Origin: Anaeramoeba ignava BMAN
Taxonomy: Eukaryota > Protista > Anaeramoebae
Direction: 5' to 3'
Assembly: GCA_028826165.1 (NCBI GenBank)
Contig: JAPDFW010000056.1
Location: 124,001-188,000, forward strand
Length of the DNA stretch: 64,000 bases
Shown here: positions 3,001 to 57,940 of the stretch, in pieces
How the letters are laid out: every line of letters starts with the position of its first letter
Numbering within the stretch: the first letter of the stretch is position 1
Program-made: the position numbers and the translations under genes
Notes under the pieces: generated by a model
What the model was told of the DNA's origin: nothing
Seen by the model: only the letters and a program-made list of their open reading frames with translations
The model's database searches: none

Positions 3001-3270
3001 AGATATCGAAATCAACCAAAAGCAAAAGTTATTAAATCCCCGTTTTTCCAACTTAAAAATAAATTTGTTAAGATAAAGTTATTAAAAGGAAAATTGATTC
3101 AATTTCGATCAGAAAATGGATATATATTTGAAATGCAAAATTCAAAACTTTATTTAAATGAAGAGAATATGGAATTGATTTTAGGAGAAGAAGAAAAAGA
3201 AGATGAAAAAGTTGTTTTAAGATTTGTAACTCAATCAGATTATGAAAAATTTAGAAAGTGGATTAAATAA
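1..3270 (+). CDS. Large protein with about 8 tandem PH-like domains; 5' end lies outside the window
   Basis: Frame 1 is open from base 1 (ETRLYSTINF...) to TAA at 3268-3270. Beta-rich units of about 110 aa recur, each ending in an F-x5-RD-x-F-type helix (FETQTSQERDILSNII, FADPQRRLGFLSDF, FDDTSQRDIFVERF, FVTQSDYEKFRKWI). The fold assignment is inference. Confidence 0.7.
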   Translation, partial: ETRLYSTINFQVSRKLIPKIKRHFATGRADFAVLIEHENEFCPGLLKLHKNFLEITIYGKKESQKFLYLEIARIKKEDDPVVDTKIAIEMQNRSAVRLQTQSLRKMIEVVNSLEMFKWYFGTDPENIAIHGEIIGTQLEIEAIAERVAEKKYATFFVSYAQQSTAKERAILRIAYSSLSLVSAVTFHTVISLTPHSPSQISISFSEESSVVLYTSTSAKYQPLTIFCNSKSQKNLIEICYQKLVAIPQDKKDLATPANIQTRRSLSLVNQSLGHQSTPRKSTFTTPSLLSNSSPIPAEIIRYVEFSRTFSPVVIQSQSHLALFNEALLDSEFTTFSADTLVLIQNSLANLIDQNNSKSNDLIVKIKVNLIGKETISCIAVLDKKSILFHEELLSQIVLFQASLPSSDLRVLLDIRNPQRFAIFSTKKKLLIFETQTSQERDILSNIILLFASGSSLISDQPTNDSPQQMIKILTPLAEEMQFNRENQKSRSIFSITKEHATPPTLIASHPVLLVNSFGQRAEHATIILEPEYFMIERKSTRKTIRRKYSLFSKLFLLDPFRTRFYIDDLHHIVLEFADPQRRLGFLSDFYSHREKYLSSSFPFIDQTPLIFNCQLKVNNLEKQATLSLRFDRIEFNILDSSSPFHPLRFSSSPSVSRKNSILRSDQFLTHQNQLSQSSLALDYSQVLTCEMENAASSLVRLHLGKSRLIRIAFFSSEFARLFVYRFKMLTFIYLNSPKISTVLFASPSHHFFDKFLVKIIHNAKNRSRPSQHIMFRIGYLIVFKQNLEQKKIDISECIVSVSSENQKSCHLRSDVDQDHFDIVFDDTSQRDIFVERFKIFQNIESFLENYHLLQNENPNQNENQTENQTETENQNETENDIENETETSEIFYNNQNQNSNNENQNQNQENLYNLRKTTQKYNLEILWPKKQSKGTIEYDPFTITFKEDDVFHSEYFISAQDFHIRSSKTKDIVQISQEQKNILFKFPDPKNVVLLIQQIKRYRNQPKAKVIKSPFFQLKNKFVKIKLLKGKLIQFRSENGYIFEMQNSKLYLNEENMELILGEEEKEDEKVVLRFVTQSDYEKFRKWIK

Positions 3271-16704: not shown

Positions 16705-16883
16705 ATTAATAAAATAAAAATAAATTAATAATAATAGAAAAAAGGAGAAAAAAAAATTTTTTTAAAGAAGGAAAATTTGACACTTTTTTTTCAAATAAAA
16801 AAAGCAAAAAAAAAATAAAATTGAAAAATTATTTTTTCATTTTTTTCTTTTTCATTTTTTTTTTGCTTTTAAAAAAATTAAAA

Positions 16884-22800: not shown

Positions 22801-23868
22801 TTTATTTAATATTTATTTAATATTTATAAATAATATTTATTTAATATTTAATATTTAATATTTATTTAATATTTATTTAATATTTATTTAATATTTATTT
22901 AATATTCATTTAATATTTATTTAATATTTATTTAATATTTATTTAATATTCATTTAATATTTAATATTTAATATTTAATATTTAATATTTATTTAATATT
23001 TAATATTTAATATTTAATATTTATTTAATATTTATTTAATATTTATTTAATATTTATTTAATATTTATTTAATATTTATTTAATATTTATTTAATATTTA
23101 ATATTTATTTAATATTTAATATTTATTTAATATTAAATATTTAATATTTAATATTTAATATTTAATATTTTTATTTAATATTTAAAATTTAATATTTAAT
23201 ATTTATTTAATATTTTTAAATAATATTTTTAATATTTATTTTAGATAAACGGAAAGAAAAAAGTTTTAAATCCTTTAATGAGTGAAAGAATCCAAAAATT
23301 CTATCAATTAGATAACATCAACGTTTTTTTATATTCTAAACCATTTAGAAAATCAAAAGAAAAAAGTGATAACGAATTTAAAGATCTGTGGTTGAAAAAC
23401 ACTTACCTTATAACAGATAAATCATTCCCAACAATTAAAAGAAGAACACTTGTAAAGGAAAAAATAATAGTAGAAATATCACCAGTTAAAAACGCAATTA
23501 AAAGTGTTCAAGAAAAAAATCATGAATTGCAAAATTTATTAAAAAAATATCAAGATTCTGATGGATCAAATATTTCCCCATTTTCTATGGCCCTAAATGG
23601 CGTTATAGATGCTGCAGTTAATGGTGGTGTTTTTAAATACAAAGACGCTTTTTTCGAAAATGAATTTGTTCAAAAAAATCAGGATAATTTTTCTCAATCT
23701 CAAATTTTAAAAAAAGCTTTGAAAAAACAACTTATGATTCTTGAATCTGGAATTGGACTTCATGCAAAGATTTGTCCTGATGATTTACGTCCATTCCATG
23801 AAAAAATGGAAACTTTCCTTGTTAAAATGAAGGATATTTTATTACCTTGTCTTCAAGAAAATTTTTAA
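16884..23868 (+). CDS. DOCK-family Rac GEF of DOCK-A/B type (SH3, DHR1/C2, DHR2), 4 exons (16884-17808, 18611-19547, 20093-22781, 23245-23868)
   Basis: N-terminal SH3 (LEIDLGD...WFRG...GIFPQNCV); DHR1 (RNDFYITV...SYVYYHKNNPVWDETIKI); DHR2 (YFRVGFFG...QEFIYRG; LNGVIDAAVNGGVFKY); exon phases compatible. Confidence 0.96.
17812..18590. repeat. Intronic ~12-bp repeat (AAAAATGAATTT)n
   Basis: Fills DOCK intron 1. Confidence 0.93.
19556..20070. repeat. Intronic repeat (AAAATATTTAATTY)n
   Basis: Fills DOCK intron 2. Confidence 0.93.
22790..23240. repeat. Intronic 7/11-bp repeat (AATATTTATTT)n
   Basis: Fills DOCK intron 3. Confidence 0.93.
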
Positions 23869-36813: not shown

Positions 36814-38598
36814 TTAATTTTGATTATTAAATTTGTTAATTAATAAATCAAATAAATTTGGATTTGTTTGATTTAATTGAAAATAATCAATTCCTCTTTC
36901 TAATTCTTCAATTATTTCTTGTGTAATTTGAATTCCTTCTTTAATTTGATTTGAATAAATCCAATATTCAAATATTTGGAATGATTTATTACTTAATTCA
37001 CTATAATCTGTAACTTTATTTGATTTATCTTCTGTTACAGATAAAAACATTCCTCGATATAATTCACTTCTCATTATTAATATTAATTTTGGAAATTTAT
37101 ATTGTTTTTCTTTTCTTTCAATTATAAAATCTTTTCCATTTTCTTTTTCATTTTCATTTAAATAAATTCTTTTCATTGTTTCTTCAATTTTTTCATTTGA
37201 ATTTATAATTTCTTTAATTTCAGAATATAATTTTGGATTTATTATTTTGTTTGAATAAATCATTTCAAATATTTGATTTGATTCTTTAATTGATTTATTT
37301 GAAATAATTTCTTTAAGTTTTTCAATTTCATTTTCATTTTGATTTAATCTATATTTCAATATTAATTTATGAGCTTTGATTATTTCTCCATTTTTGGTTT
37401 TAAATGAAATATCACAAAATTCTTTTCTTCTAAATAATTTTATCAAATCTTCTTCAAGATTGGAAAAAGGAGGAGGAGAATAATAAAGAAATGAATTTCG
37501 ATATCCACAAGAAATATGATAATTGAAAATATTTTCATTAAATCTTAATTTAGGAAGTTCAATTTGAAATGGAATTGATTGAATATTTGTATCTCCAATT
37601 CCTAATTGTCCAGAATAATTATATCCAAATCCAATCAATTTTGAATTAGATGTTAAAATCAAAGTATGATAGCATCCAACAGAACAATCAAGAATACGAT
37701 CTTTTCTGAATAAAGATGATTTGATTTCAGTAAATTCATAAGTATTTCGAAATACATTTTCACCAAGTCCATTAAATCCGTTATCTCCACATGAATAAAG
37801 TTTTCTTTTTAGATTTTCATTTTCAATCAACATTATTGAATGAGACCCTCCACATTGAATATCAATTATTTTACCTTTTGGAATATTTTGGATTTTGGTT
37901 AATTTATTGATTTTTTCTTCTTTTATTCTTGATTCTCCTAATCCGAGTTGACCATATCTATTTAATCCACATCCAAATAATTCTTGATTTAAATTTAAAA
38001 GAAAAACACAATGTGAAGAATTTCCTGAAAATATTTTAGAAACATTTTTCATCATTAAAATTGGTTTTTCTGTTTTTTTAAGTGTTTCAGAATCAAAACC
38101 AAGTTGACCAGAATCATTTGATCCAATTCCATAAACATTTTGATTTGAAGTTAATAAGTAAATCGAAAATATGCCACAAACAATATCTTGAATTATTCTA
38201 TCATTTGTATTTTCAATTAATGATGAAATATTAATAAATTGATTTGGATTTTTTGGATTAATATCATTTCCTTTTGCAAATAGATTTCCTTCTATTGTTA
38301 AAATAGCTTCATTATGACTACCAACAGTTACTTTTTGAATATTTTCTTCAATTTGGATTTTTGAAGGATTTTGATTTGAATCTTTTTCTTCATTTAAATA
38401 TTCTATTGCTTTTCCATTTTCAAAAAGGAAAATTGTTGAAAATCTTCCTGTTGAAATTTGTTTAATTTCATTTTCATTTTCATTTTCATTTTCATTTTCA
38501 TTTTCAAATTTAAATTGAATTGGTTTTTTTATTTCATTTGATTTATTTTTGAAAAGAATTGGGTTTTCATTTAAACCAAAAAATAAAATTTCATTCAT
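36814..38598 (-). CDS. RCC1-repeat propeller + BTB/POZ protein, copy 1 (intact, intronless)
   Basis: G-x-N-x-x-GQLG and I-x-CG-x-x-HS blades; BTB motifs FCDISF...AHKLIL and LILIMRSELYRGMF...FEYWIYS. Confidence 0.92.
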   Translation of the reverse strand: MNEILFFGLNENPILFKNKSNEIKKPIQFKFENENENENENENEIKQISTGRFSTIFLFENGKAIEYLNEEKDSNQNPSKIQIEENIQKVTVGSHNEAILTIEGNLFAKGNDINPKNPNQFINISSLIENTNDRIIQDIVCGIFSIYLLTSNQNVYGIGSNDSGQLGFDSETLKKTEKPILMMKNVSKIFSGNSSHCVFLLNLNQELFGCGLNRYGQLGLGESRIKEEKINKLTKIQNIPKGKIIDIQCGGSHSIMLIENENLKRKLYSCGDNGFNGLGENVFRNTYEFTEIKSSLFRKDRILDCSVGCYHTLILTSNSKLIGFGYNYSGQLGIGDTNIQSIPFQIELPKLRFNENIFNYHISCGYRNSFLYYSPPPFSNLEEDLIKLFRRKEFCDISFKTKNGEIIKAHKLILKYRLNQNENEIEKLKEIISNKSIKESNQIFEMIYSNKIINPKLYSEIKEIINSNEKIEETMKRIYLNENEKENGKDFIIERKEKQYKFPKLILIMRSELYRGMFLSVTEDKSNKVTDYSELSNKSFQIFEYWIYSNQIKEGIQITQEIIEELERGIDYFQLNQTNPNLFDLLINKFNNQN

Positions 38599-38762
38599 TT
38601 TTGAAAAGAAAAAAAATGAAAAAAATGATTTTAATTTTAATTTTAATTTTAATTTTAATTTTAATTTTAATTTTAATTTTAATTTTAATTTTAATTTTAA
38701 TTTTAATTTTAATTTTAATTTTAATTTTAATTTTAATTTTAATTTTAATTTTAATTTTAATT

Positions 38763-38864
38763 TTAATTTTGATTATTAAATTTATTAATTAATAAATCAA
38801 ATAAATTTGGATTTGTTTGATTTAATTGAAAATAATCAATTCCTTTTTGAATTTCATTAATAAT
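38763..38864 (-). pseudogene. Isolated 3' remnant of a further RCC1-BTB copy
   Basis: Translates IINEIQKGIDYFQLNQTNPNLFDLLINKFNNQN*, embedded in (TTTTAA)n. Confidence 0.85.
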
Positions 38865-39046
38865 TTTAATTTTAATTTTTATTTTAATTTTAATTTTAAT
38901 TTTTAATTTTAATTTTAATTTTAATTTTAATTTTAATTTTAATTTTAATTTTGATTTTAATTTTGATTTTGATTTTGATTTTAATTTTAATTTTAATTTT
39001 AATTTTAATTTTAATTTTAATTTTGATTTTAATTTTAATTTTAATT

Positions 39047-40850
39047 TTAATTTTGATTTTGATTTTGATTATTAAATTTGTTAATTAATAAATCAAATAA
39101 ATTTGGATTTGTTTGATTTAATTGAAAATAATCAATTCCTCTTTCTAATTCATTAATAATTTCTTGTGTAATTTGAATTTCATCTTTAATTTGATTTGAA
39201 TAAATCCAATATTCAAATATTTGAAATGATTTATTACTTAATTCACTATAATCTGTAACTTTATTAGAAGTATCATTTGTTACAGATAAAAACATTCCTC
39301 GATATAATTCACTTCTCATTATTAATATTAATTTTGGAAATTTATATTGTTTTTCTTTTCTTTCAATTATAAAATCTTTTTCATTTTCATTTTCATTTTA
39401 ATTTAAATAAATTCTTTTCATTGTTTCTTCAATTTTCTCATTTGAATTTATAATTTCTTTGATTTCAGAATATAATTTTGGATTAATTTTGGAATTATTT
39501 GAATAAATCATTTCAAATATTTGATTTGATTCTTTAATTGATTTATTTTGAAATAATTTCTTTAAGTTTTTCAATTTGATTTTGATTTAATCTATATTTC
39601 AATATTAATTTATGAGCTTCAATTATTTCTCCATTTTCGGTTTTAAATGAAATATTGCAAAATTCTTTTCTTCTAAATAGCTTTATCAAATCTTCTTCAA
39701 GATTGGAAAAAGAAGAAAGAAAAGGAGAATAATAAAGAAATGAAGTATCATTTCCACAAGAAAGATGATAATTAGGAAATATCTTCATTAAATCTTAATT
39801 TAGGAAGTTCAATTTGAATTGGAATTAATTGATCTTTTGTATCTCCAGTTCCTAATTGTCCAAATAAATTATTTCCAAATACTATTAATTTTGAATTGGA
39901 AGTTAAAATCAAAGTATGATAACATCCAACAGAAAAATCAAGAATATTATCATTTTCAAATAAAGATGATTTAATTTCAGTAAATTCATAAATATTTCCT
40001 CCATCTTTTTCAAGTCCAGTATATGAATAAACCCCACATGAATAAAGTTTTCTTTTTGGATTTTCATTTTCATTTTCATTTTCAATCAACATTATTGAAT
40101 GAAAATTTCCACATTTAATATCAATTATTTCACCTTTTGGAATATTTTGGATTTTGGTTAATTTTTGGATTTTTGTTTCTTTTCTTGATTCTCCTAATCC
40201 GATTTGACCATATCTATTTAATCCACATCCAAATAATTCTTGATTTGAAGTTAAAAGAAAAACACGATGTGAATAATCTCCTGAAAATATTTTAGAAACA
40301 TTTTTCATCATTAAAATTGGTTTTTCTGTTTCTTTAAGTGTTTCAGAATCAAAACCAAGTTGACCAAAAAAATTATCACCAATTCCATAAGCATTTTGAT
40401 TTGAAGTTAATAAATAAATTGAAAATATGCCAGAAACAACATCTTGAATTATTCTATCATTTGTATCTTCAATTAATGATGAAATATTGATAAATTCATT
40501 TGGATTTTTGGATTAATATTTTCTCCTTTGGCAAATACATTTCCTTCTATTGTTAAAATAGCTTCATTATGACTACCAACAGTTACTTTTTGAATATTTT
40601 CTTCAATTTGGATTTTTTGAGGATTTTGATTTGAATATTTTTGGTTTAAATATTCTATTGCTTTTCCATTTTTAAAAAGGAAAATTGTTGAAAATTCACC
40701 TGTTGAAATTTGTTTAATTTGTTTTTCATTTTCATTTTCATTTTCATTTTCATTTTCAAATTTAAATTGAATTGGTTTTGTTATTGAATCTGTTTTATTT
40801 TTGATAAGAATTGGATCTTCATTTGAACCAAAAAATAAAATTTCATTCAT
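39047..40850 (-). pseudogene. RCC1-BTB copy 2, disrupted (3 frameshifts and 1 in-frame TAA)
   Basis: Full-length homology split by indels near 40505, 39776 and 39547, and by GAA>TAA near 39399. Some lesions may be sequencing errors. Confidence 0.75.
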
Positions 40851-40897
40851 TTTTGAAAAGAAAAATGAAAAATTTTTAAAAATTAAACAATTTGAAT

Positions 40898-42694
40898 TTA
40901 ATTTTGATTTTGATTTTGATTTTGATTATTAAATTTGTTAATTAATAAATCAAATAAATTTGGATTTGTTTGATTTAATTGAAAATAATCAATTCCTCTT
41001 TCTAATTCTTCAATTATTTCTTGTGTAATTTGAATTTCATCTTTAATTTGATTTGAATAAATCCAATATTCAAATATTTGGAATGATTTATTACTTAATT
41101 CACTATAATCTTCAACTTTATTTGATTTATCTTCAGTTACAGATAAAAACATTCCTCGATATAATTCACTTCTCATTATTAATATTAATTTTGGAAATTT
41201 ATATTTATTTTCTTTTCTTTCAATTATAAAATCTTTTTCATTTTCATTTTCATTTAAATAAATTCTTTTCATTGTTTCTTCAATTTTTTCATTTGAATTT
41301 ATAATTTCTTTAATTTCAGAATATAATTTTGGATTTATTATTTTGTTTGAATAAATCATTTCAAATATTTGATTTGATTCTTTAATTGATTTATTTGAAA
41401 TAATTTCTTTAAGTTTTTCAATTTCATTTTGATTTTGATTTAATCTATATTTCAATATTAATTTATGAGCTTCAATTATTTCTCCATTTTCGGTTTTAAA
41501 TGAAATATCACAAAATTCTTTTCTTCTAAATAATTTTATCAAATCTTCTTCAAGATTGGAAAAAGAAGAAGAAGAATAATAAATAAATGATTTTCTAGAT
41601 CCACAAGAAAGATGATAATTAGAAATATTTTCATTAAATCTTAATTCAGGAAGTTCAATTTGAATTGGATTTGATTGATCATTTGTATCTTCAGTTCCTA
41701 ATTGACCATATTCATTGTTTCCAAATGCTATTAATTTTGAATTGGAAGTTAAAATCAAAGTATGATAACATCCAACAGAACAATCAAGAATATTATCATT
41801 TTCAAATAAAGATGATTTGATTTCAGTAAATTCATAAGTATTTCGAAATACATTTTCGCCAAGTCCATTAAATCCGTTATGGCCACATGAATAAAGTTTT
41901 CTTTTTAGATTTTGATTTTCATTTTCATTTTCAATTAACATTATTGAATGTAAACTTCCACATTGAATATCAATTATTTTACCTTTTGGAATATTTTGGA
42001 TTTTGGTTAATTTATTGATTTTTTCTTCTTTTATTCTTGGTTCTCCTAATCCGAGTTGACCATATCTATTTAATCCACATCCAAATAATTCTTGATTTAA
42101 ATTTAAAAGAAAAACACAATGTGAAGAATTTCCTGAAAATATTTTAGAAACATTTTTCATCATTAAAATTGGTTTTTCTGTTTTTTTAAGTGTTTCAGAA
42201 TCAAAACCAAGTTGACCAGAATCATTTGATCCAATTCCATAAACATTTTGATTTGAAGTTAATAAGTAAATCGAAAATATGCCACAAACAACATCTTGAA
42301 TTATTCTATCATTTGTATTTTCAATTAATGATGAAATATTAATAAATTGATTTGGATTTTTTGGATTAATATCATTTCCTTTTGCAAATACATTTCCTTC
42401 TATTGTTAAAATAGCTTCATTATGACTACCAACAGTTACTTTTTGAATATTTTCAATTTGGATTTTTTGAGGATTTTGATTTGAATATTTTTGGTTTAAA
42501 TATTCTATTGCTTTTCCATTTTTAAAAAGGAAAATTGTTGAAAATTCACCTGTTGAAATTTGTTTAATTTCATTTTCATTTTCATTTTCATTTTCATTTT
42601 CAAATTTAAATTGAATTGGTTTTGTTATTGAATCTGTTTTATTTTTGATAAGAATTGGATCTTCATTTGAACCAAAAAATAAAATTTCATTCAT
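40898..42694 (-). CDS. RCC1-BTB copy 3 (intact, intronless)
   Basis: ATG at 42694 (MNEILFFG) by homology with the other copies. Confidence 0.92.
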   Translation of the reverse strand: MNEILFFGSNEDPILIKNKTDSITKPIQFKFENENENENENEIKQISTGEFSTIFLFKNGKAIEYLNQKYSNQNPQKIQIENIQKVTVGSHNEAILTIEGNVFAKGNDINPKNPNQFINISSLIENTNDRIIQDVVCGIFSIYLLTSNQNVYGIGSNDSGQLGFDSETLKKTEKPILMMKNVSKIFSGNSSHCVFLLNLNQELFGCGLNRYGQLGLGEPRIKEEKINKLTKIQNIPKGKIIDIQCGSLHSIMLIENENENQNLKRKLYSCGHNGFNGLGENVFRNTYEFTEIKSSLFENDNILDCSVGCYHTLILTSNSKLIAFGNNEYGQLGTEDTNDQSNPIQIELPELRFNENISNYHLSCGSRKSFIYYSSSSFSNLEEDLIKLFRRKEFCDISFKTENGEIIEAHKLILKYRLNQNQNEIEKLKEIISNKSIKESNQIFEMIYSNKIINPKLYSEIKEIINSNEKIEETMKRIYLNENENEKDFIIERKENKYKFPKLILIMRSELYRGMFLSVTEDKSNKVEDYSELSNKSFQIFEYWIYSNQIKDEIQITQEIIEELERGIDYFQLNQTNPNLFDLLINKFNNQNQNQNQN

Positions 42695-42726
42695 TTTTGA
42701 AAAGAAAAAAATGAAAAAAAAATTTT

Positions 42727-44603
42727 TTAAAAAATTAAACAATTTGAATTTGTTTTTGGATTTTGATTATTAAATTTGTTAATTAATAAATCAAATAAAT
42801 TTGGATTTGTTCGATTTAATTGAAAATAATCAATTCCTCTTTCTAATTCTTCAATTATTTCTTTTGTGTAATTTGAATTTCATCTTTAATTTGATTTGAA
42901 TAAATCCAATATTCAAATATTTGAAATGATTTGTTACTTAATTCACTATAATCTGTAACTTTATTAGAAGTATCATTTGTTACAGATAAAAACATTCCTC
43001 GATATAATTCACTTCTCATTATTAATATTAATTTTGGAAATTTATATTGTTTTTCCTTTCTTTCAATTATAAAATCTTTTTCATTTTCATTTTCATTTAA
43101 ATAAATTCTTTTCATTGTTTCTTCTATTTTTTCATTTGAATTTATAATTTCTTTAATTTCAGAATATAATATTGGATTTATTTTGGAATTATTTGAATAA
43201 ATCATTTCAAATATTTGATTTGATTCTTTAATTGATTTTTTTGAAATAATTTCTTGAAGTTTTTCAATTTGATTTTGATTTAATCTATATTTCAATATTA
43301 ATTTATGAGCTTCAATTATTTCTCCATTTTCTGTTTTAAATGAAATATTGCAAAATTCTTTTCTTCTAAATAATTTTATCAAATCTTCTTCAAGATTTAA
43401 AAAAGGAAGAAAAGAATAATAAAGAAATGATTTGTTAAATCCACAAGAAAGATGATAATTAGAAATATTTTCATTAAATCTTAATTCAGGAAGTTCAATT
43501 TGAATTGGAATTAATTGATTATTTGTATCTCCATTTCCTAATTGACCATAATCATTTTCTCCAAATCCTATTAACTTCCCTTTTGTTGTTAAAATCAAAG
43601 TATAACAATATCCAACAGAAAAATCAAGAATACGATCTTTTCTGAATAAAGATGATTTAATTTCAGTAAATTCATAAGTATAATTATATTTTTTGCCAAA
43701 TCCATTAAATTCATGATCTCCACATGAATAAAGTTTTCTTTTTTGGTTTTTATTTTCAATCAACATTATTGAATGAGTAGGTCCACATTGAATATCGATT
43801 ATTTTGCCTTTTGGAATATTTTGGATTTTGGTTAATTTTTTGATTCTTTCTTCTTCTATTGATTCTCCTAATCCAAGTTGGCCAGTATGATTATCACCAC
43901 ATCCAAATAATTCTTGGTTTGAATTTAAAAGAAAAACATGATTTGAAGAATTTCCTGAAAATATTTTAGAAACATTTTTCATCATTAAAATTGGTTTTTC
44001 TGTTTCATCAAGTGTTTCAGAATTGGAATCAGGGAGAAATTGTTCATGATAATTATAATGAATAGCATAAGCATTTTTATTTGAAGTTAATAAATAAATT
44101 GAATTCTCTGCACAAACAATATCTTCAATTATTCTATCATTTGTATCTTCAATTAATTCAGAAATATTCATAAATTCATATCGATTTGATGTAATTATAT
44201 TCTTTCCTTGTGCGAATGCCTTTCCTTCATAAGTTAAAATAGCTTCATGTAAATCACCAACAGATACTTTCTTAATATTTTCAATTATGATTGTATAAGG
44301 ATTTTGATTTGAATCATTTTCTTCATTTAGATATTCTATTGCTTTTCCATTTTTAAAAAGGAAAATTGTTGAATAATTTCCTGTTGAAATTTGTTTAATT
44401 TGTTTAATTTGATTTTCATTTTCATTTTCATTTTCATTTTCATTTTCATTTTCATTTTCATTTTCATTTTCATTTTCATTTTCATTTTCATTTTCATTTT
44501 CATTTTCAAATTTAAATTGAATTGGTTTTTTTATTTTTTTTGAAGATTTATTTAAAAAAAGTTTTGGTTTTTTATTTGAACCAAAAAAGAAAATTTCATT
44601 CAT
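42727..44603 (-). CDS. RCC1-BTB copy 4, most divergent; +2 frameshift near the 3' end (about 42863)
   Basis: Homology continues past the ORF stop at 42855 (IEELERGIDYFQLNRTNPNLFDLLINKF) to TAA at 42727. Confidence 0.85.
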
Positions 44604-44853: not shown

Positions 44854-47800
44854 ATGACAACTTCAAGAAGAAAGACACGAACATTAATAAGAACACGTTC
44901 ACAAGAAAGCATGGAATTCACAACAACGCCTATGTTTTGGGAAGCATGTTTAGAAGATGATTCCGAAGTGATTCCTACTTTATTAATTCCGACATTAGCC
45001 AAAAGTTATTTAATCCGTTCAAAAACCGAAACTGGAGATACTGGAATTCATTATTGTTGTTTTAAACAAGGAAAACAAGTTGAGTCGTTGAAGGTCTTAA
45101 TGTCTTATCACATGAACCAAAACAATAAGAATAATTTCGGTTGGTCTCCTTTGCATATTTCTTGTATTCAAGGTCTTCATAATCATTGTGAAGAGCTTTT
45201 AAGTAATGGTGCTGATCCAGATTCTGTTAATAATTTAGGGCTTTCCCCAATTCATTATGCTTGCAAATATGGTCATTCTCAATGTTTGAATGTTTTACTT
45301 AAATATAATGCCAAATTAAATGTAATTTCTTTTTTTAAATTTAAAACAAATTTTTTAAAAAGAAATTAATAAGAAGAAAGAAAAAAAAATTTTTTTATTT
45401 TTGAATGAAAGAGGGATTATTTTAATTCGAAATCTAAATTACAAATTCAAATAAAATCTAAAATAATTTAAAATTAAATCTAAATTAAAAATTAAAATAA
45501 AATCTAAAAATAAAAATCTAAAATTAAATCTAAAATAAAATCTAAAATAAAAATTTAAAATAAAATCTAAATTAAAAATCTAAATTAAAAATCTAATAAT
45601 TTAAAATAAAATCTAAAATAATTTAAAATAAAATCTAAAATAAAAATTAAATTAAAAATCTAAAAATAAAAATCTAAATAAAAATATAAAATAAAATCTA
45701 AAATAAAATCTAAAATAAAATCTAAAAATAAATCTAAAAATAAAATCTAAAATAAAATCTAAAATAAAATCTAAAATAAAATCTAAAATAAAATTTAAAA
45801 ATAAAATCTAAAATAATTTAAAATAAAAATATAAAATAAAATCTAAAATAAAATTTAAAATAAAATCTAAATTACAAATTAAATTAAAAATCTAATATAA
45901 AATCTAAAAATAAAATCTAAAATAAAATTTAAAATAAAATCTAAAATAAAATTTAAATTAAAATCTAAAATAAAATCTAAAATAAAATCTAAAATAAAAA
46001 TCTAAAAATAAAATCTAAAAATAAAATCTAAAATAAAATCTAAAATAAAATTTAAAATAAAATTTAAAATAAAATCTAAAATAAAATCTAAATAATTTAA
46101 AAATAAAATATAAAATAAAATCTAAAATAAAATTTAAAATAAAATCTAAAATAAAAATCTAAAATCTAAAATAAAATCTAAATTAAGAATCTAAATTAAA
46201 ATCTAAAATAAAATCTAAAATAAAATTTAAAATAAAATATAAAATAAAATCTAAAATAAAAATCTAAAATAAAATCTAAAATAAAATCTAAAATAAAATC
46301 TAAAATAAAATCTAAAATAAAATTTAAAATCTAAAATAAAATCTAAAATAAAATCTAAAATAAAAATCTAAAATAATTTAAAATAAAATTTAAAATAAAA
46401 TCTAAAATAAAATCTAAAATAAAATCTAAAATAAAATCTAAAATAAAATCTAAAATAAAATCTAAAATAAAATCTAAATTAAAATTTAAAATCTAAAATA
46501 AAATCTAAAATAAAATTTAAAATCTAAAATAAAAATAAAGAAACTTCCTGATAATGAAACTCTTTTAATGCTTGCTGCAAAACATGGAAATACAGAAATT
46601 ATCGAAATTTTAACAAAAATTGGTGAATCAGTTAGTGAAAAAAGAACAGATGGTCAAAACGCTTTTCATTATGCTATCAAAAATGGAAATCTTCAAAGTT
46701 GTTCAGCTCTTCTTAAAGCAGGAGCAGATATAAATTCACAAGATCATTCTGGATATTCTAGTTTACATCATGCTGTTAAAATCGGATCTTTTGAAATTAC
46801 AGAATTTTTAATTCAAAATGGTGCTTCTGTAAACATTAGATTAAATTCAGGAGATTCTCCACTTCATTGTGCAGTTAGAAATAAACATTTTTTGATCACA
46901 AAATTATTATTAGATTCTGGAGCAAATCCTAACTTTCGAGATTCTAAAGGAAGAGTTGTAAATTTTTATTTTAATTTCAATTAAAATTAATTCATCAAAT
47001 TTCATGTATTTTGAATTTGATTTAAATCAAATTTCATGTATTTTGAATTTATTTTAAATTTATTTTAAATTTATTTTGAATTTATTTTTAATTTCAATTT
47101 AAAATTCAAATTCATCAAATTTTAAATTTATTTTGAATTTATTTTGAATTTATTTTAATTTCAATTAAAATTATTTCATCAAATTTCATGTATTTGAATT
47201 TATTTTGAATTTATTTTGAATTTGATTTAAATTTATTTTAAATTTATTTTGAATTTAATTTATTTTGAATTTGATTTAAATCAAATTTCATTGATTTAAA
47301 TTTATTTTAAATTTATTTTAAATTTATTTTGAATTTATTTTAAAATTTGATTAAATAAAAAGGCTCTCCATTACGCAACAAAAAATCAAGACTATAAATT
47401 ATTCAATATTCTTCTTGATCAGAAATGCAAATCCATATATAAAAGATCGCAAAGGAAGAGATCCCCTAAAATACACAAAAATCAAAAAACATTATGAATT
47501 TCTGTTTGTGGTTCTTGATCTCGCATTAATAAACATAGTTTTTTATAGAAAAAATGAATACGTTTCACAATTAATTGATGATGGAGCAAGTGTTGATGGA
47601 CAAAACTTCCAGCAATACATCAACAAATTGGAAGAAACAATAAAAACACAACAAGAAACAATATCGGAAACAGATCTTCGCAAAGAACTCAAGAAAGAAT
47701 TGAGCTATTTAAATAACATGTATTCTTCACCAATGATTGCTTCAGTTTCTGGAAAAAACTATGAAGCATTTCGGATTCTACTCAATAAATTTGCAGAAAT

Positions 47801-50081
47801 GAAACAGAACGATTATTTCACTGGGCATTCCGCATTGCACAAAGCGGTGCTGAATAACGACGCACATTTTGTAAAAATATTACTTGAACACAATGCTTCT
47901 GTGACTGTTACAGATCACGATAACCAGACACCACTAGATATCATCCGCACAAAGAATTTTGTAAAATGCCAGCAAGTGATCGAGCACTCACAACTTCTTC
48001 ATGTGCGATATCTTCCGCGCCAGAAGTTTCCGAAGATTGTGCATGGAACGCTGGAAAAATTATTAGAAAGACTTTTAACGGAAACGCTATTTGAATATCA
48101 ATTTTGTTTGTATTTCCTGCTGATGTTCAGGTTTTTCCAGAAAAAGAAAGAAATGTTGAACAAACTCATCTGGATCTTCGAAAATGCTGAGGAATACATC
48201 TCGAATATTGCTCATTTTGAATCAAACACAAATGAGGACAAAATCAAGTTTTTAAGAGTTAGAATTGCGATTGTTTTAGAAACTTGGATTTACGAGTTGT
48301 TCACAGATTTCCACAAGAACAAACCCTGCAGGAACCCATCCAAATCGAGACTCAACAGCGAGTTGATCTCAAAGCTTTCCTTTTTTGACCCTGAAAACTA
48401 TGAGGAACAGCTATTAAAGATACAGGAATGGTATCTGAAAAACTTAAAGCCCAAAAACGAGGTCATGTTTACAAAAGAATCCCTCAATCATCTTTTCACA
48501 AGTGAGACAGATGAAAAAGCACAAGCATTCTCGCAGAGTCCAAAGGTTCAGAGAAAATTGGAAAAGGCAAACTCCGATAAGAAAAAACTTTCAAGCGAGA
48601 AAAAATTGCAAAAACAGCTCCGCAAAATCAGCCAAAAAGAACCAACAACGCTGAGCAATCTAGCGCAGATATTCCAGGAATCCTCGCCACAATCACAACA
48701 GAGAACATCTCGTGTAACAAGAATAAAAAGCACAGTTTCAATTAGCGATTTGATTAACCCAGATATCCTGAGCGAGATGCCTGAAGAACCAACAGTAAAC
48801 ACAAAAAGCACAAAAAATTCGACTCATTTTGTGGCCAAAACTTGGACACGAAATTCACTGAAAAGATGGGGATCTCAACCCGAAAACATTGGACGAAATC
48901 GAGCGCGTTTTGATCCGCGCAAGACATTCAACATTCTTCTAGAATTCATAACACGAAATGCGGAGAAATTTTCTTCCGAAATGATTCCTTTAAAATACGC
49001 ACTTACAGAACAATTGAGTTACTACACACAAAAATACATTAAAGAACCATTGACAAAAATAGCGAACACAACAAACCCATCCTGGTTTGATCCGTGGCGC
49101 GCTGATAGAAAGGCACAAGCTATTATCACAGACGACATTCGCGCCAATAACGCTGGGATGATGTATTTATTTGTGGAGGTTGACGGGATGATTTATGCCC
49201 GTCATAAACCCTGGAGAGCCACTTGGATCAGTGATCCGTTTGATAATCCGCAGATTCAAAGTATTCTGGAGAGACCTATTCCAGAGTCTGTTATCAAAAA
49301 ACAGAAGAAATCCAAGAAACATGTTCACGATGTAATTTTGGATAATGATCCACTTGAAATCGCACGTCAATTAACCCTTCTTGAATTCTCGTATTTCGAC
49401 AAGATTCCCATGCTCGAGATCAAGAACTGGACTAACGGAAGAGGGTTGACAACCGAGCAACTGAAAGAAAGCAAGGTTCTGTTCAAAAACCTGCCAAATA
49501 TGATCGTTTTTGATGAACATTATAATAAAATTGTGAATTTTGTCATTTTCCAAATTGTAAAAACTGTCAATCTCAAAAAACGTCTGCGAATGCTTTCCAG
49601 ACTGATCCAAGTTTCGTATCATCTCCGCAAACTCAACAACTATTCATCTCTTATGGAGATTCTCGAGGGATTCAACCAAGAACCTGTTCTTCGTCTTAAG
49701 AAAACATGGTCAAAACTCGAAAAGTCAAGCAAACAAATACTAATGAATCTCAAGAAGGAATTGCGAGAACTAGAGCTTGAGTCGCAGTACCGCAATCACT
49801 ACAAAGAGCTGCTTCCGCCTTGTATTCCCTATATTGATCATTTCATGAATGATATCGAAGAAATGGATAAAACTTTTGTTGATATTGATCAAGATCAAAG
49901 GATCCAATTTGAAAAATTTGTAAATCAGTTCAAATTGATTGAAACAATCACAAAGTTTCAACGGTTTAACTTTAGATTTAATCCTATTCAATCCATTCAA
50001 ACTTTAATCGAAAATTCCCCATTTTGTTCAAATGAAAAATTGATTGAAATGTCCTTGATTTGTGAGAAAAAACGCAAATAA
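44854..50081 (+). CDS. Ankyrin-repeat RasGEF (ANK repeats, REM, CDC25 domain), 3 exons (44854-45321, 46541-46957, 47363-50081)
   Basis: G-x-S/T-PLH ankyrin motifs; REM (IVHGTLEKLLERL...FLLMFRFF); CDC25 (DPLEIARQLTLLEFSYF, LNNYSSLMEI, RLKKTW, PPCIPY). One +1 indel near 47423. Confidence 0.92.
45430..46535. repeat. Intronic 12-bp repeat (AAAATAAAATCT)n
   Basis: Fills intron 1 of the ANK-RasGEF gene. Confidence 0.95.
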
Positions 50082-50185
50082 AAAAAAATTTTTCTTTTTT
50101 TTTTTTTATAATTTTTTTTTTCATTTTTTCTTTTATTTTTTTTCAAATTAAAATTTATATTATAAAATTTATAAAAAAAATAATC

Positions 50186-51469
50186 ATGGAAGAAACAAAA
50201 AAACCAAAAATACAAAAACTAAAACAACTTGTTACAAAAAAATCACAATTTGGTGAATTTGAACAAAAAGAAATGGAACAAACAATTAAAAAGCAAGTAC
50301 AATTTGAAGAAGATCAAGAAATTAAAAAAGAAAAAGAAGAAATTAATAAAAAAGAAAAAGAAGAAAATATTCAAAAAGAAGAAAAAGTAAAACCCCAAAA
50401 ATTCCAAATGAAACAATACATGAGAGATCTTGCTCTGAAAATTGCCCAATCAAACGAGCAACTCAAGGATACAAACTTATCCAATCCAATTGCGCAAAAA
50501 GTTGGATTTGAAACTTTATCAAATATTAAAGACGGTTTTAATTTACTTGATAGGGATGAAAAATACCATCTCCAAATTAAAGACGGAGATGTAAAATTAT
50601 CAAACAGAAGACAAACAGTTTATAAATGGGATCACTCCCAAAAAAAAGAAGAGCAAAACACTCAAAAAGAAGGCGAGGAAAATCACGATGTTTTGGAAGA
50701 ATTAATTCAGGAATGGCCGTTTATTCTTATTGACTCTCAAGCAAATTCAACAAAAAACAGGAAATTCTTCAACAAGTTGCACAAAACTAATCTGAAACTA
50801 TGGAAAAGAAAAAGAACCAAATCTCTTCGCAAAAAAAAGAAAGACGATCCAAATGAAAATGAACCAAAAAACGCGCCAAAACTTTTTCATATTTATTTGG
50901 ATGATTTTTCGAAAAATCCCGAGGAAACACTTTTTCCTTTTGTCGATACATGCATTCAAATCATAGAAGAAAAGGGGATTGATGATGAAGGGGTTTACCG
51001 TTTATCAGGTTCTTTTAGCGAAATTAATTCCATTCGAAAAAAACTTGATGAAGGAGAATCTGTTGATTTAAATGCTTTTCAAGTAACAACAATAACTAGT
51101 TTGTTTAAGTTGTTTTTCCGCGAATTACCCGAAACGTTATTAACACAAGAAATTTGCGGGAAAATCGATGCTGTTTCCTTGGCAAGTCCTGATAAAATTG
51201 AACAGATTAGATCTTGTATTGATCAAGTTCCTTCTTTGAATAAAATTATTGCTAATAAATTGTTTTCTCATTTGCATAAGATCCAATTAAATGCTGAAAA
51301 AAACAAAATGAATGCACACAATCTTGCAATTGTATTTTTTCCTTCTTTATTAATTAATTACGAAATGACAACGTTTATTATTGAGAATTATCCAAAAATT
51401 TATGAAGACAATAAAGAAGAAAATCAACAAGAAAATCAGCAAGAAAATCAAAATCAAAATCAAAATTAA
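50186..51469 (+). CDS. RhoGAP-domain protein, single exon
   Basis: EGVYRLSGS (arginine finger intact), SLFKLFFRELPETL, NKMNAHNLAIVFFPSL. Confidence 0.95.
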   Translation: MEETKKPKIQKLKQLVTKKSQFGEFEQKEMEQTIKKQVQFEEDQEIKKEKEEINKKEKEENIQKEEKVKPQKFQMKQYMRDLALKIAQSNEQLKDTNLSNPIAQKVGFETLSNIKDGFNLLDRDEKYHLQIKDGDVKLSNRRQTVYKWDHSQKKEEQNTQKEGEENHDVLEELIQEWPFILIDSQANSTKNRKFFNKLHKTNLKLWKRKRTKSLRKKKKDDPNENEPKNAPKLFHIYLDDFSKNPEETLFPFVDTCIQIIEEKGIDDEGVYRLSGSFSEINSIRKKLDEGESVDLNAFQVTTITSLFKLFFRELPETLLTQEICGKIDAVSLASPDKIEQIRSCIDQVPSLNKIIANKLFSHLHKIQLNAEKNKMNAHNLAIVFFPSLLINYEMTTFIIENYPKIYEDNKEENQQENQQENQNQNQN

Positions 51470-51569
51470 AATTCATTTCAAAAAATGTTTACTTCAAAAT
51501 GATTCAAAAAAAAAAATAATAAAATTTTTCAAAATTATTTTTTTCATTTTTTTCTTAATAAAAAATATA

Positions 51570-54500
51570 ATGGGATTATTTTGTCTTGGATTGGAAGGAA
51601 GTGCAAATAAATTAGGAGTAGGAATTGTAAAAGAAGATGGAACAATATTAGCAAATTTGAGAGAAACATATATTACTCCTCCTGGAGAAGGATTTATTCC
51701 AAGCAAAACTGCAAAACATCACAGCAAAAAAATTATTTATTTAATTAAAAAAGCTTTTTTAACTGCAAAAGTTTTACCAAAAGATATTGGTTTAATTGCT
51801 TATACTAAAGGTCCTGGAATGGGTGGTCCTCTTCAAAATGTTGCTATTGTTGCTAGAATGTTAAGTCAAATGTGGAATGTTCCTATTATTGGTGTTAACC
51901 ATTGTGTTGCTCGTTTGTTTCATAAACAAAATTATAAACAATTATTAACAAAAATTATTAAAAAAAATTATTAACAAATTTATAAACAAATTTATAAACA
52001 AAATTATAAACAAAATTATTAACAAAATTATAAACAAATTTATAAACAAAATTATTAACAAATTTATAAACAAATTTATAAACAAAATTATAAACAAATT
52101 TATAAACAAATTTATAAAAATAAAATTTTATAAAACAAAATTTATTAACAAAATTATAAAAAACAAATTTATTGAACAAAATTATAAACAAATTTATTAA
52201 TAAAATTATTAACAAAATTTATAAACAAATTTATTAACAAATTTATTAACAAAATTATAAACAAAATTATAAATAAAATTATTAACAAATTTATTAACAA
52301 AATTATAAACAAATTTATAAACAAATTTATAAACAAATTTATAAACAAAATTATTAATAAAAATTATTAACAAAATTATAAACAAATTTAATAAACAAAT
52401 TTATTAACAAATTTATTAACAAAATTATAAATAAAATTATAAACAAATTTATAAACAAAATTATTAACAAAATTATAAATAAAATTATTAACAAATTATA
52501 AACAAAATTATTAACAAATTTATAAACAAAATTATAAACAAATTTATAAAATTAAACAAATTTATAAACAAAATTATAAACAAATTTATAAACAAATTTA
52601 TAAACAAATTTATAAACAAAATTATAAACAAAAATTATTAACAAAATTATTAACAAACAAAAATTATTAACAAAATTATAAACAAAATTATTAACAAAAT
52701 TATTAACAAATTTATTAACAAATTTATAAACAAATTTATAAACAAATTTATTAACAAATTTATAAACAAATTTATAAACAAATTTATAAACAAAATTATA
52801 AACAAATTTATAAACAAAATTATAAACAAATTTATAAACAAAATTATTAACAAATTTATTAACAAAATTATTAATAAAATTATTAATAAAATTATAAACA
52901 AAATTATAAACAAAATTATTAACAAATTTATTAACAAATTTATTAACAAAATTATAAATAAAATTATTAACAAAATTCGAAATATAAAATAAATAGATAT
53001 TGAAATGGGTAGAATTGTAACAGGAGCTAAAGATCCAATAGTTCTTTATGTTTCAGGAGGAAATACACAAGTTATTGCATATTCTTTAAAAAAATATCGA
53101 ATATTTGGAGAAACTATTGATATTGCTGTAGGTAATTGTTTAGATAGATTTGCAAGAGCGATTAATTTATCTAATGATCCAAGTCCAGGATATAATATAG
53201 AACAAAAAGCAAAAGAAGGTGGAAATAATTTTATGTAAGAAATATTATAAAATATTATAAAATAAATAATATAAAATAAATAATATAAAAGAAATATTCT
53301 AAAATAAATATTACAAAATAAATATTCCAAAATAAATATTATAAAATATTATAAAAGAAATATTATAAAATAAATATTATAAAATAAATATTATAAAAGA
53401 AATATTATAAAATATATATTATAAAATAAATATTATAAAATAAATATTATAAAATAAATATTATAAGTTTCGGAAATTCCAAAATCCCTACCTAGCTTCT
53501 CCCAATATGGATAATGCTTTAGCCATGTTAATGACATTAAGAATTGGTTTTCTTTAGATAGTTTTTTCCGTCTCCTTCTTCTTCCTTTTGATTCGCAAAC
53601 TTCTTCAATTTTATGGAATAATTCCAGAAAAGGTTGAAATTCAAAATTCGTTAAAACTTTCAATCTTTGTTCTTTGCCAGCACTTTCAAGATAGTGATAA
53701 TTATGATTGTCTGCAATTTCCGATAAATTGTCATCTTCTGAATCAAACTCTTCGATTATGTTAGCCTCATTAGTGTTATGATTATTCTCATACCAATTAT
53801 CTTTAATCTCCATGTGAGAAAAAATGAAAAAAAAATTCATTAGCGAATTAATAGAAATTAGTGAATTAATAGAAATTAGTGAATTAATAGAAATTAGCGA
53901 ATTAATAAAAATTAGTGAATTAATAGAAATTAGCGAAGCAGATGAATTCGTCCGAAGGTTTAATAATTCCTGTTAGCCGAAATGAATTGGTTATTGTTAA
54001 TCCTAGAATAGAATTCCATATTTTGATACATCCTTCAGAAACTTTGGTTCTTTTTGTTTGAGCACAATCTAACTTATTTATAATGCCTGTTATTTCCTCC
54101 TTATATTTACCTTTAAATTGTCTAAAAATCAATTTATCCAAGGGACGAAGTTGACCTGTCATATTTTGTGGAATCAATTCAATAAGGACTTCCTTTTTTT
54201 TGGCAAATTCAATGAAAGTGGAATTTATATGAGTTTTGAAATTATCTACGATCAAAACACAAGGAGTCTGAACATTGGGTAAAAAACTGGATTTAAATCA
54301 ATCATATTGTGTTCTTTTTGTCATCCAAACACTTTTTTTTGCAAAAAAAGTTCCATTATGTACATCTTCTCTCATCCACTTTTTGGCATATTTGCCTTCT
54401 TTGAAAATAAAACCTAATGGGAGTTTATTACCATCTCCAGCAATACAACCAATCAGTGTACATGATTGTTTTTGATTTATTTTGTTTCTTGCTAATACTT

Positions 54501-56320: not shown

Positions 56321-57940
56321 TTAAATGAAATAAGTTTCAACTTCATCAACAACCCATGAATTAAAAGAACCAGCTAAATAACTTTTACCTTCATTTGTAT
56401 TATAAGTAATTCCATTAGGTAGATTATAACTATAACCAATATTTGAATAACCAGGTTGTAAATTAGAAGATAACCAAAAATCATTTCCATAAGTTCCATC
56501 ACCAAACATTGGACCATAACTTAAACCAGAATAAATTGCATGACTTTGTTTATATGTAAACTTTGCAGGTATTCTATCTCCTTTATCATTTCTTAATGAA
56601 AAAATAAATGCATTTGAATCATTAATTCTTCCTGTATCTCCATTAAATCCAACTTGAGTAAAACCTCCAAAAATAAAATTATCTGTTGTTTTGATAATAA
56701 CTAATGTTTTTCCTTTCCCATCAACTGCTTTATGCCAATTTTGAGAATTAAATCCATTTTTTTTTGCTGAAAATCCTTTTTTCATTTTAGAAAAAAAATC
56801 ATTATCATTTATCCATTCTTGTAATTTCTTAACATATTCTTCTTCTATAATAATTCTTGTTTCTGAAAATTGAGGAAAATTCTTTTTGATTGGTTCCAAT
56901 TTCTTTTCATATTCCAAATCTTTTTGATATTGATCTCCATATTTATCAAAAATAGGTTTCATTTTCTCAATCTCTTTCTTCCATTTCTCTTCCATTTCAA
57001 TTTTCATTTGTTGATTTTCTTTCTCTTTGTTTTCAATTTCTTTGTTTTTATCTTCAATTTCTTTCTTCCATTTCTCTTCAATTTCCTTTTGATTATCTTG
57101 AATAACTTTGTTTTGAATATCAACTAAAAAAGATTTAGGAAAAAAATCAAATTGTTTTAATTTATCAAAATCTTGTTTTGAAATTGAATCTTTATCAAAT
57201 AATGAAAAAAAAGAATGAAATAATCTTTTCTTTGAATTCATTTTGTGTTCATATTTCCTTAATTTTAATTTTTTATTTCTTTTTTCAATCCAATTATTTA
57301 AAAATTGAAAAAAATCAAATTGAAAAATTTCTTTTTTTTGTTGTTTAAATTGAATAAATTTGATAATTTCTTCTTTAGTTAAATTGAATAAATTCTCATT
57401 ATTTTGAATTTGGGAAAAATTTTGATTTATTAATTCAAAACATTTTATTTCAATTTCATTTGAATTTAAATTTCGATTTTGGAATAAAAATTGGAAAAAA
57501 TTTGAATAATTAATTGAATTTAAGATTTTTTTTTGAATAAATTCTTTCAATAAATTTAATTTAAAATAAATTGAAATTTCCAATAATTGAATAAGATTTT
57601 CTTTATTCTCAAAAGAAATATTTCCATAATAAATATAACTCAAAATTGATTCCATTTCTTTTTTATTAAATTGATTTAAAGAAATAGAAAGAGATTCTTG
57701 CCTTAATGATTCATTAAAAAAAGGAGATCTTGAAGATAAAATTGATTTATGAACTTTAATTTCAAAAGGATTTGATTTATTCTCAACAAAAATTGAAAAA
57801 TCTTTAAATGAATTTCCATTTAAAAGGTTTGAATAATCTTTAATTAAATTTTTTGTTACTTTTTTTTCTAAATTTTTCATTTCATTTTGATTTTGATTTT
57901 GATTTGCATTTTGAATTTGGTTATTATTATTGTTATCCAT
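56321..57940 (-). CDS. BTB/POZ + BACK-like + coiled coil + TLDc protein, intronless
   Basis: FKDFSI...VHKSILSSRSPFF (BTB); KKGFSAKKNGF...WHKAVDGKGKTLVIIKT...IFGGFT...AFIFSL...YGPMFG...YLAG...VDEVETY (TLDc). Confidence 0.93.
   Translation of the reverse strand: MDNNNNNQIQNANQNQNQNEMKNLEKKVTKNLIKDYSNLLNGNSFKDFSIFVENKSNPFEIKVHKSILSSRSPFFNESLRQESLSISLNQFNKKEMESILSYIYYGNISFENKENLIQLLEISIYFKLNLLKEFIQKKILNSINYSNFFQFLFQNRNLNSNEIEIKCFELINQNFSQIQNNENLFNLTKEEIIKFIQFKQQKKEIFQFDFFQFLNNWIEKRNKKLKLRKYEHKMNSKKRLFHSFFSLFDKDSISKQDFDKLKQFDFFPKSFLVDIQNKVIQDNQKEIEEKWKKEIEDKNKEIENKEKENQQMKIEMEEKWKKEIEKMKPIFDKYGDQYQKDLEYEKKLEPIKKNFPQFSETRIIIEEEYVKKLQEWINDNDFFSKMKKGFSAKKNGFNSQNWHKAVDGKGKTLVIIKTTDNFIFGGFTQVGFNGDTGRINDSNAFIFSLRNDKGDRIPAKFTYKQSHAIYSGLSYGPMFGDGTYGNDFWLSSNLQPGYSNIGYSYNLPNGITYNTNEGKSYLAGSFNSWVVDEVETYFI

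Follow-up and report, generated by a model that had tools for sequence, protein, structure and literature searches.

Large families of cullin adaptors are known in nematodes and plants, where F-box and MATH-BTB genes evolve by birth and death, keep a conserved cullin-binding part and carry a positively selected substrate-binding part, for which the recognition of foreign proteins has been proposed (Thomas 2006, cited through PMC8665587). The family described here belongs to Anaeramoeba ignava, an anaerobic, free-living metamonad that harbors bacterial symbionts (PMC11550330). It is represented by four head-to-tail RCC1-BTB gene copies, all on the minus strand, at 36814-44603 of a 64,000-nucleotide stretch of contig JAPDFW010000056.1 (positions 124,001 to 188,000; this whole stretch is called the window, and coordinates are window positions) in a genome assembly of 42.8 Mb and 147 contigs. 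The explanation that we favor, with some reserve, is that the family forms a germline-encoded, diversifying recognition repertoire of substrate adaptors for cullin-RING ligases.

The family resembles the nematode and plant F-box and MATH-BTB families in its large size, its conserved cullin-type part and its selected binding part. It differs in having an RCC1 propeller in place of the FTH, FBA2 or MATH domain and a tandem, apparently self-dimerised BTB pair, and in being one young subfamily of ~1,200 copies, with variation in ~25-40 loop codons, in a free-living unicellular metamonad. By analogy, it would work like the nematode F-box and MATH-BTB repertoires; what is new is the scaffold (RCC1 with a BTB pair predicted to dimerise with itself), together with the size of the family, the restriction of its variation to paratope-like sites, and the host. 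The animal proteins RCBTB1, RCBTB2 and IBTK are RCC1-BTB adaptors of Cul3 that likewise place an RCC1-like propeller before a BTB domain, and IBTK is a shown receptor of a Cul3 RING ligase (CRL3; PMC4447969). These proteins are conserved and low-copy, whereas those of A. ignava have an inserted first BTB domain (BTB1), lack BACK and 3-box, and form a massive, hypervariable family; the likeness is one of sequence profile. UVR8, BLIP-II and the HERC RCC1-like domains share the fold (Z 23-41), and the hypervariable positions are the positions of the interfacial Trp residues of UVR8, but those proteins have single conserved binding surfaces, with no repertoire and no BTB domain. Massive expansions of F-box and BTB-box ubiquitin-ligase adaptors in an amoeba-bacterium setting are described for the Parachlamydiaceae (PMC4209131); there they are bacterial effectors acting on the host, whereas the present family is encoded by the host itself. 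Literature searches found no published description of an A. ignava RCC1-BTB-BTB family. The main text of the genome paper mentions neither BTB nor RCC1, and its supplement holds RCC1-type PANTHER names among genes flagged for lateral gene transfer, mostly from A. flamelloides (PMC11550330).

The array and its parts are as follows.

36814-38598, minus strand: copy 1, an intact RCC1-BTB-BTB gene of 594 amino acids (aa) without introns (translation, Pfam)
38599-38760, no strand assigned: spacer between genes with a T-rich 5' leader, a TCATTTT element and an (AAAATT)n hexamer tract, as is usual for the cassette
38745-38896, minus strand: ~150-bp 3'-end fragment of another copy, with (AAAATT)n tracts on both sides (blastn search of the window with copy 3, 86% along 152 nt)
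39047-40850, minus strand: copy 2, full length, broken in the assembly by three 1-nt homopolymer indels and a premature TAA
40898-42694, minus strand: copy 3, intact, 598 aa (P0004), the reference for residue numbers
41570-42694, minus strand: RCC1-like propeller of copy 3, aa 1-375, seven blades, with the ring closed by N- and C-terminal strands (AlphaFold)
40904-41566, minus strand: tandem BTB pair of copy 3, aa 377-597, a shortened BTB1 and a complete BTB2, without 3-box or BACK
41951-41956, minus strand: codons 247-248 of copy 3, example of a hypervariable A-B loop (aligned with the UVR8 GWRHT motif)
41870-41881, minus strand: codons 272-275 of copy 3, example of a hypervariable C-D loop
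42743-44603, minus strand: copy 4, the most divergent, with an open reading frame (ORF) at 42855-44603 (582 aa) that ends early at a 2-nt homopolymer insertion, and homology to ~42743

Pfam detected RCC1 repeats and BTB in copies 1, 3 and 4; in copies 1 and 3 the BTB match falls into two stretches. The insertion in copy 4 removes the last BTB helices. The indels of copies 2 and 4 are all changes in homopolymer length and therefore may be long-read errors; the breaks in copy 2 may accordingly mark either a pseudogene or sequencing error, and the one public read run (short contigs, library type unspecified) had no bearing on them.

The original prediction held that the four copies share near-identical BTB halves and blade frameworks and differ sharply at equivalent loop positions. 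The five sets of loop motifs that it quoted were all present as written in the codon alignment and translations, and the contrast between near-constant BTB and framework and variable loops was far beyond chance and held in 113 full-length paralog proteins, to which the following figures refer. Entropy exceeded 2.5 bits in 24 propeller columns and in no BTB column. The 25 hypervariable sites had a mean pairwise identity of 15%, compared with 85% for the framework of the propeller and 93% for the BTB half, and the fingerprints at the hypervariable sites were distinct in 113 of 113 proteins. Each blade carries such sites, both following the A-B turn Gly and where the C-D loop begins. Besides the examples listed above, copy 3 has hypervariable A-B loop codons at 50, 90-91, 139-140, 190-192, 309-310 and 366-367, and hypervariable codons in or near C-D loops at 9-12, 107, 158-159, 170, 208-211, 326-328 and 339-341. 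When the residues were compared with the expectation from AT mutation pressure, Ile (1.8% against 25%) and Lys (3.9% against 21%) were depleted, and Tyr, Ser, Asp, Glu and Trp were enriched (Asp plus Glu 16% against 0.4%; aromatic residues 27%, against 10% in the framework).

Positively selected residues made up 30 of the 96 positions in A-B and C-D loops and none of the 65 in B-C and D-A loops (p=3e-8, by the strand order of the model), with six further selected sites at strand ends adjoining the A-B and C-D loops. Because propeller topology places the A-B and C-D loops together, the selected loops would lie on one face, as had been expected. We infer from DSSP strand order, topology and alignment to the homolog UVR8, rather than from measured distances, that the variable sites occupy this one face. 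The hypervariable positions align to the GWRHT and WGW motifs of UVR8, whose tryptophans are interfacial (PMC8748919).

Codon models were fitted to 30 DNA copies over 527 codons. Model M2a was preferred to M1a with twice the log-likelihood difference (2dL) at 988 and a dN/dS ratio (omega) of 6.5 on 8% of codons, 39 of the 40 sites being in the propeller; when multi-nucleotide hits were allowed, 2dL was 641 and omega 5.6, with 36 of 37 sites in the propeller. The proposed excess of dN over dS at the loop codons was thus obtained against the gene-wide silent rate. In order to avoid circularity, 25 sites were also defined on 92 held-out proteins. At these sites the tree-free proportion of replacement differences (pN) was 0.575, compared with a silent proportion (pS) of 0.09 elsewhere, and neutrality at the background silent rate was rejected (2dL 240-870). 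The BTB part had an omega of 0.17, indicating purifying selection. A conserved BTB part combined with a propeller site class at omega 5.6-6.5 is the pattern of a repertoire, with a caveat concerning the silent rate (see below), and together with the restriction of the selected loop sites to A-B and C-D loops it supports the variable receptor with constant tail that had been put forward. That the family is a selected recognition repertoire is, in our assessment, highly probable.

Variation also appeared to be exchanged between copies. The tree of the copies was star-like, incompatibility climbed from 0.39 to 0.57 as distance grew, and p was <0.001 in a PHI-like test. Hypervariable residues at least 3 apart were nearly independent (mean z 0.2-0.5), and neighbors were linked (z 3.5). 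A silent-linked GGA-AGR micro-haplotype at codons 8-9 was common to seven copies scattered over the tree, with a common ancestor spanning 27 of 30 tips, and between copies 1 and 3 there were 4 differences over 438 bases in one stretch but 20 over 147 bases in another. The simplest explanation is gene conversion in short patches, with a contribution from recurrent mutation. Double-nucleotide substitutions gave a better fit even for conserved BTB and framework codons (2dL 76-137), which suggests frequent multi-nucleotide mutation in the AT-rich A. ignava genome.

The AlphaFold model of copy 3 had a predicted local distance difference test (pLDDT) score of 88.8 and a predicted template modelling (pTM) score of 0.83. 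Its propeller (aa 1-375) matched Prp20, RCC1, HERC2, RPGR and UVR8 at Z 36-41, and membership of the RCC1-like domains was indicated by Pfam (PF25390/PF00415) and by Z 40.8 to Prp20 and to RCC1-like domain 3 of HERC2. The BTB/POZ fold of the C-terminal half was recognized by PF00651, by a profile match to KBTBD4 (E=1e-10) and by the match of residues 377-590 to the tethered Miz1-BCL6 POZ dimer 4u2m (Z 14.5, 193 residues, root-mean-square deviation 3.9). Because of this last match, BTB1 and BTB2 probably fold on each other like a BTB dimer, as an intramolecular pseudo-dimer; with its BTB domains paired in this way each protein would probably be monomeric, so that 1,200 paralogs need not mix. 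A profile match to an RCBTB1-like protein of starfish (probability 99.7, E=9e-26) aligned the starfish BTB with BTB2, and by sequence BTB2 appears to be the domain common to the RCBTB1-like protein, with BTB1 as an insertion. According to the strand order of the model, the BTB module exits the propeller on the face opposite the A-B and C-D loops.

In solved complexes, Cul3 is contacted by a phi-x-D/E motif in the alpha3/beta4 loop of the BTB domain and touched by the alpha5/alpha6 region, where a conserved Asp contacts Cul3 Y125 (PMC3616122; 10.1101/461806). In BTB2 the motif is in register with KBTBD4 and RCBTB1 as T520-E521-D522, with D522 at the E position invariant among the 113 proteins, and in divergent subfamilies it reads V/I-x-D; BTB1 lacks the motif. 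The stretch G567-Q572 (G-I-D-Y-F-Q) is likewise invariant in the 113 proteins and includes D569, which corresponds to SPOP D278 and KLHL11 D181 by motif position, not by superposition. The sequence evidence on Cul3 is mixed (see below); cullin binding by BTB2 is likely, and the family is a candidate member of the Cul3 adaptors. The A. ignava genome holds ~8 cullin genes. The supplement of PMC11550330 gives more than 30 cullin genes for A. flamelloides and 8 for A. ignava, an expansion pattern opposite to that of the present family. As a separate observation, residues 562-566 of copy 3 (~40997-41011) form a variable patch (D/N/E, I/L, E/Q/K, I/R/T) in alpha5 of BTB2, and residue 566, which adjoins the invariant G-I-D-Y-F-Q, scores as positively selected.

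In the genome as a whole, there were 1,079 occurrences of a 19-mer from the propeller and 1,245 of a 35-mer from BTB2, and none of the reversed controls. The family thus comprises ~1,100-1,250 copies, equivalent to ~2.2 Mb or ~5% of the genome; ~1,200 copies are roughly 8% of ~14,800 gene models, a gene number judged from locus tags. Copies of the young subfamily are ~83% identical to each other. They lie singly or in arrays of 2-6 at ~2 kb spacing, on both strands of many contigs, and the unit is a compact 1.85-kb cassette consisting of an intronless ORF, a ~35-nt T-rich leader and (AAAATT)n tracts at its bounds. Of 41 starts, 39 had TCA(C/T)T(A/T) in the preceding 45 nt, a count for which no chance control was run; this TCATTTT-like element resembles the Trichomonas initiator. 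Among other top loci, 27 of 28 translate to 586-639 aa, and the TAA stops that seemed to lie inside them came mostly from alignment of the query's C-terminal repeat beyond the true stop. Of the downstream neighbor copies (around L009-L029), 5 of 14 are interrupted, as pseudogenes or through assembly errors, within the first 1.1-1.4 kb, only part of each having been read. Short arrays, fragments and broken copies together show a lineage-specific expansion with birth and death in clusters.

All named matches among the best 120 protein matches were from A. ignava. Older A. ignava subfamilies were found at 33-42% identity, two of them in a transcriptome-derived set. The A. flamelloides relatives that were found are only 27-34% identical, and for this reason the young subfamily looks specific to A. 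ignava among the sequences compared. A modular variant was also seen, in which armadillo-repeat N-termini are fused to the RCC1-BTB-BTB module (P0125, P0126 and P0130 of A. ignava, 50-58% identity to copy 3). In gene models P0045 and P0127 a Ras/Rho domain or TLDc is attached to the module; these may be real fusions or mis-annotated read-through. In A. flamelloides, P0162 (1590 aa) has the same BTB tail behind several RCC1 propellers, with a local identity of 34%.

Several points weigh against a positively selected family of cullin adaptors. The 30 DNA copies are those closest to copy 3 and not a random sample, and the site models assume one tree, when the tree is star-like and recombinant. 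Silent sites beside the loops are 2-3 times more variable. A single-hit model that fitted a separate silent rate to the hypervariable sites put their omega at 1.17, which was not significant; with multiple hits added it was 1.6-5.1 (p 0.10 to 3e-6) and depended on the codon frequencies, class-specific frequencies giving dS 0.4-0.7 and omega 3-5 (p 5e-4 to 3e-6) and global frequencies omega 1.6 (p=0.10). As to the cullin link, the phi position of the motif is Thr, with the invariant V519 one residue earlier, and 3-box and BACK are absent: the chain stops after helix 580-597, which is alpha6 of the BTB domain, and no BACK match was found with Pfam. The last two helices were considered as a 3-box, which was ruled out by the model and alignments that make them BTB alpha5 and alpha6; the family is not of the BTB-BACK type (KLHL, SPOP, RCBTB). 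None of the ~8 A. ignava cullins is classed as Cul3, and excavate cullins are hard to classify (PMC2785787). Finally, no RNA evidence for the young subfamily was found in the public run of short contigs with unspecified library type.

The raised silent variation could mean that loop diversity is made by dedicated, targeted local hypermutation or by templated rewriting of micro-patches, and that selection only filters it. In the single-hit class model the silent rate (alpha) was 2.6 at hypervariable sites and 0.3-0.4 elsewhere, Gly third positions 5' of these sites had 3.0 codons compared with 1.9 (p=0.002), and multi-hit weight at the hypervariable sites was 0.6 compared with 0.2-0.3, all of which would suit such a process. 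However, under multiple hits with site-class frequencies alpha was 0.4-0.7 and the background value of 0.35 was not rejected, and simulated deep alleles shuffled among copies gave values inflated to 0.8-3.2 from a true 0.35. Furthermore, at site 367 a C-ending third base is kept across Tyr, Asn, Phe and Ser codons as positions 1 and 2 change, and the codons used go beyond an AAY-derived set (GAA, CAA, TGG and AGA are common). We read the raised silent rate as adjacent silent changes hitchhiking with selected alleles, and consider dedicated hypermutation quite unlikely. A diversity-generating retroelement was also rejected, since the variable sites extend over 14 loops in 1.1 kb and many codons could not be derived from AAY by changes at positions 1-2; no search for a reverse transcriptase was made. 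An intronless cassette that is dispersed in both orientations between (AAAATT)n bounds, with interrupted copies among its neighbors, might instead have been amplified selfishly or neutrally, with its surface loops merely unconstrained. The rate tests largely refute this, as the loop replacement rate is 6-9 times the background silent rate; in addition, the BTB part is under purifying selection, the opposite-face loops are not variable, and visual inspection of the flanks revealed neither terminal repeats nor target-site duplications nor a poly(A) tail. Selfish or neutral amplification is given very little probability, and cargo of a transposon with terminal repeats was also rejected. The homopolymer frameshifts of copies 2 and 4 recall long-read errors, and would fit an assembly or sequencing artefact behind false paralogs or variation. 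Such an origin is scarcely credible, given that the substitutions cluster at structurally equivalent codons in all seven blades, that the copies lie on many contigs with all 113 proteins distinct, and that divergent subfamilies occur in the transcriptome-derived set.

A further rival accepts a selected repertoire and denies the ubiquitin-ligase adaptor: the BTB pair would be a structural stalk or dock on a different constant partner, and the propellers would bind or regulate diversified host or symbiont proteins, for instance as partners, resembling guanine nucleotide exchange factors, of expanded Rab/Rho GTPases at the symbiosome. RCC1-like domains are known partners of small GTPases, and the non-canonical phi-x-E motif and missing 3-box point the same way. 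Rabs are indeed expanded in Anaeramoeba (PMC11550330). Against this, the alpha3/beta4 Asp and the alpha5/alpha6 DYFQL persist in subfamilies that share only 33-42% identity, in keeping with a conserved cullin contact, and co-evolution with an organism's own proteins would rarely yield omega above 5 together with independent loops. We regard this rival as unlikely.

Under the adaptor-repertoire explanation, each ~590-aa protein would present a hypervariable surface rich in Tyr, Asn, Ser and Asp on one face of its RCC1 propeller, and the constant tandem BTB pair, predicted to dimerise with itself, would make it a monomeric receptor. BTB2 would probably bring a Cul3-type cullin to ubiquitylate the protein bound by the propeller; the role of cullin adaptor is fairly probable. 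The repertoire grew as the intronless 1.85-kb cassette was duplicated, forming short tandem arrays that are spread over many contigs, and it is diversified by point and multi-nucleotide mutations that positive selection retained, with loop variants probably shuffled among copies by short-patch gene conversion. The likely targets would be rapidly evolving proteins of foreign or selfish origin, for example effectors from prey or symbiotic bacteria, from viruses or from mobile elements, although for foreign targets we see the chances as evenly balanced. A bolder form, a cell-autonomous, antibody-like immune repertoire of ~1,200 monomeric receptors whose 14 paratope-like loops are recombined by micro-conversion, possibly with locally raised mutation, and which send symbiont, prey or viral proteins to a cullin ligase, is doubtful and is offered tentatively.

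Elsewhere in the window, 56321-57940 (minus strand) encodes a BTB-TLDc protein of 539 aa. A genome search with PF00651 gave 3,711 first-look candidates, of which the best 150 were mostly in frames of 450-550 aa and scored far above the BTB domains of the array; these high-scoring frames therefore indicate a second large BTB family in the A. ignava genome, possibly BTB-TLDc. A GC-rich ORF of 1057 aa at 97-3270 (plus strand) had no Pfam match, and Atlas features gave only weak PH- or syntrophin-like leads, with scores below 0.9. The regions 16821-23868 and 44854-51974 hold ordinary signalling genes: SH3-DOCK (DOCK_N, TPR, DHR-2), ankyrin-RasGEF and RhoGAP.

As a natural library, the family maps the positions at which an RCC1 propeller accepts any residue, information of use for binder scaffolds. 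Intracellular recognition of foreign proteins in single-celled eukaryotes is largely an open subject, and the idea of adaptor repertoires rests mostly on nematodes and plants. With ~5% of a protist genome in one young family, and with its variation in a few loop codons, the idea of adaptor immunity becomes directly testable in a cultured organism that houses symbionts.

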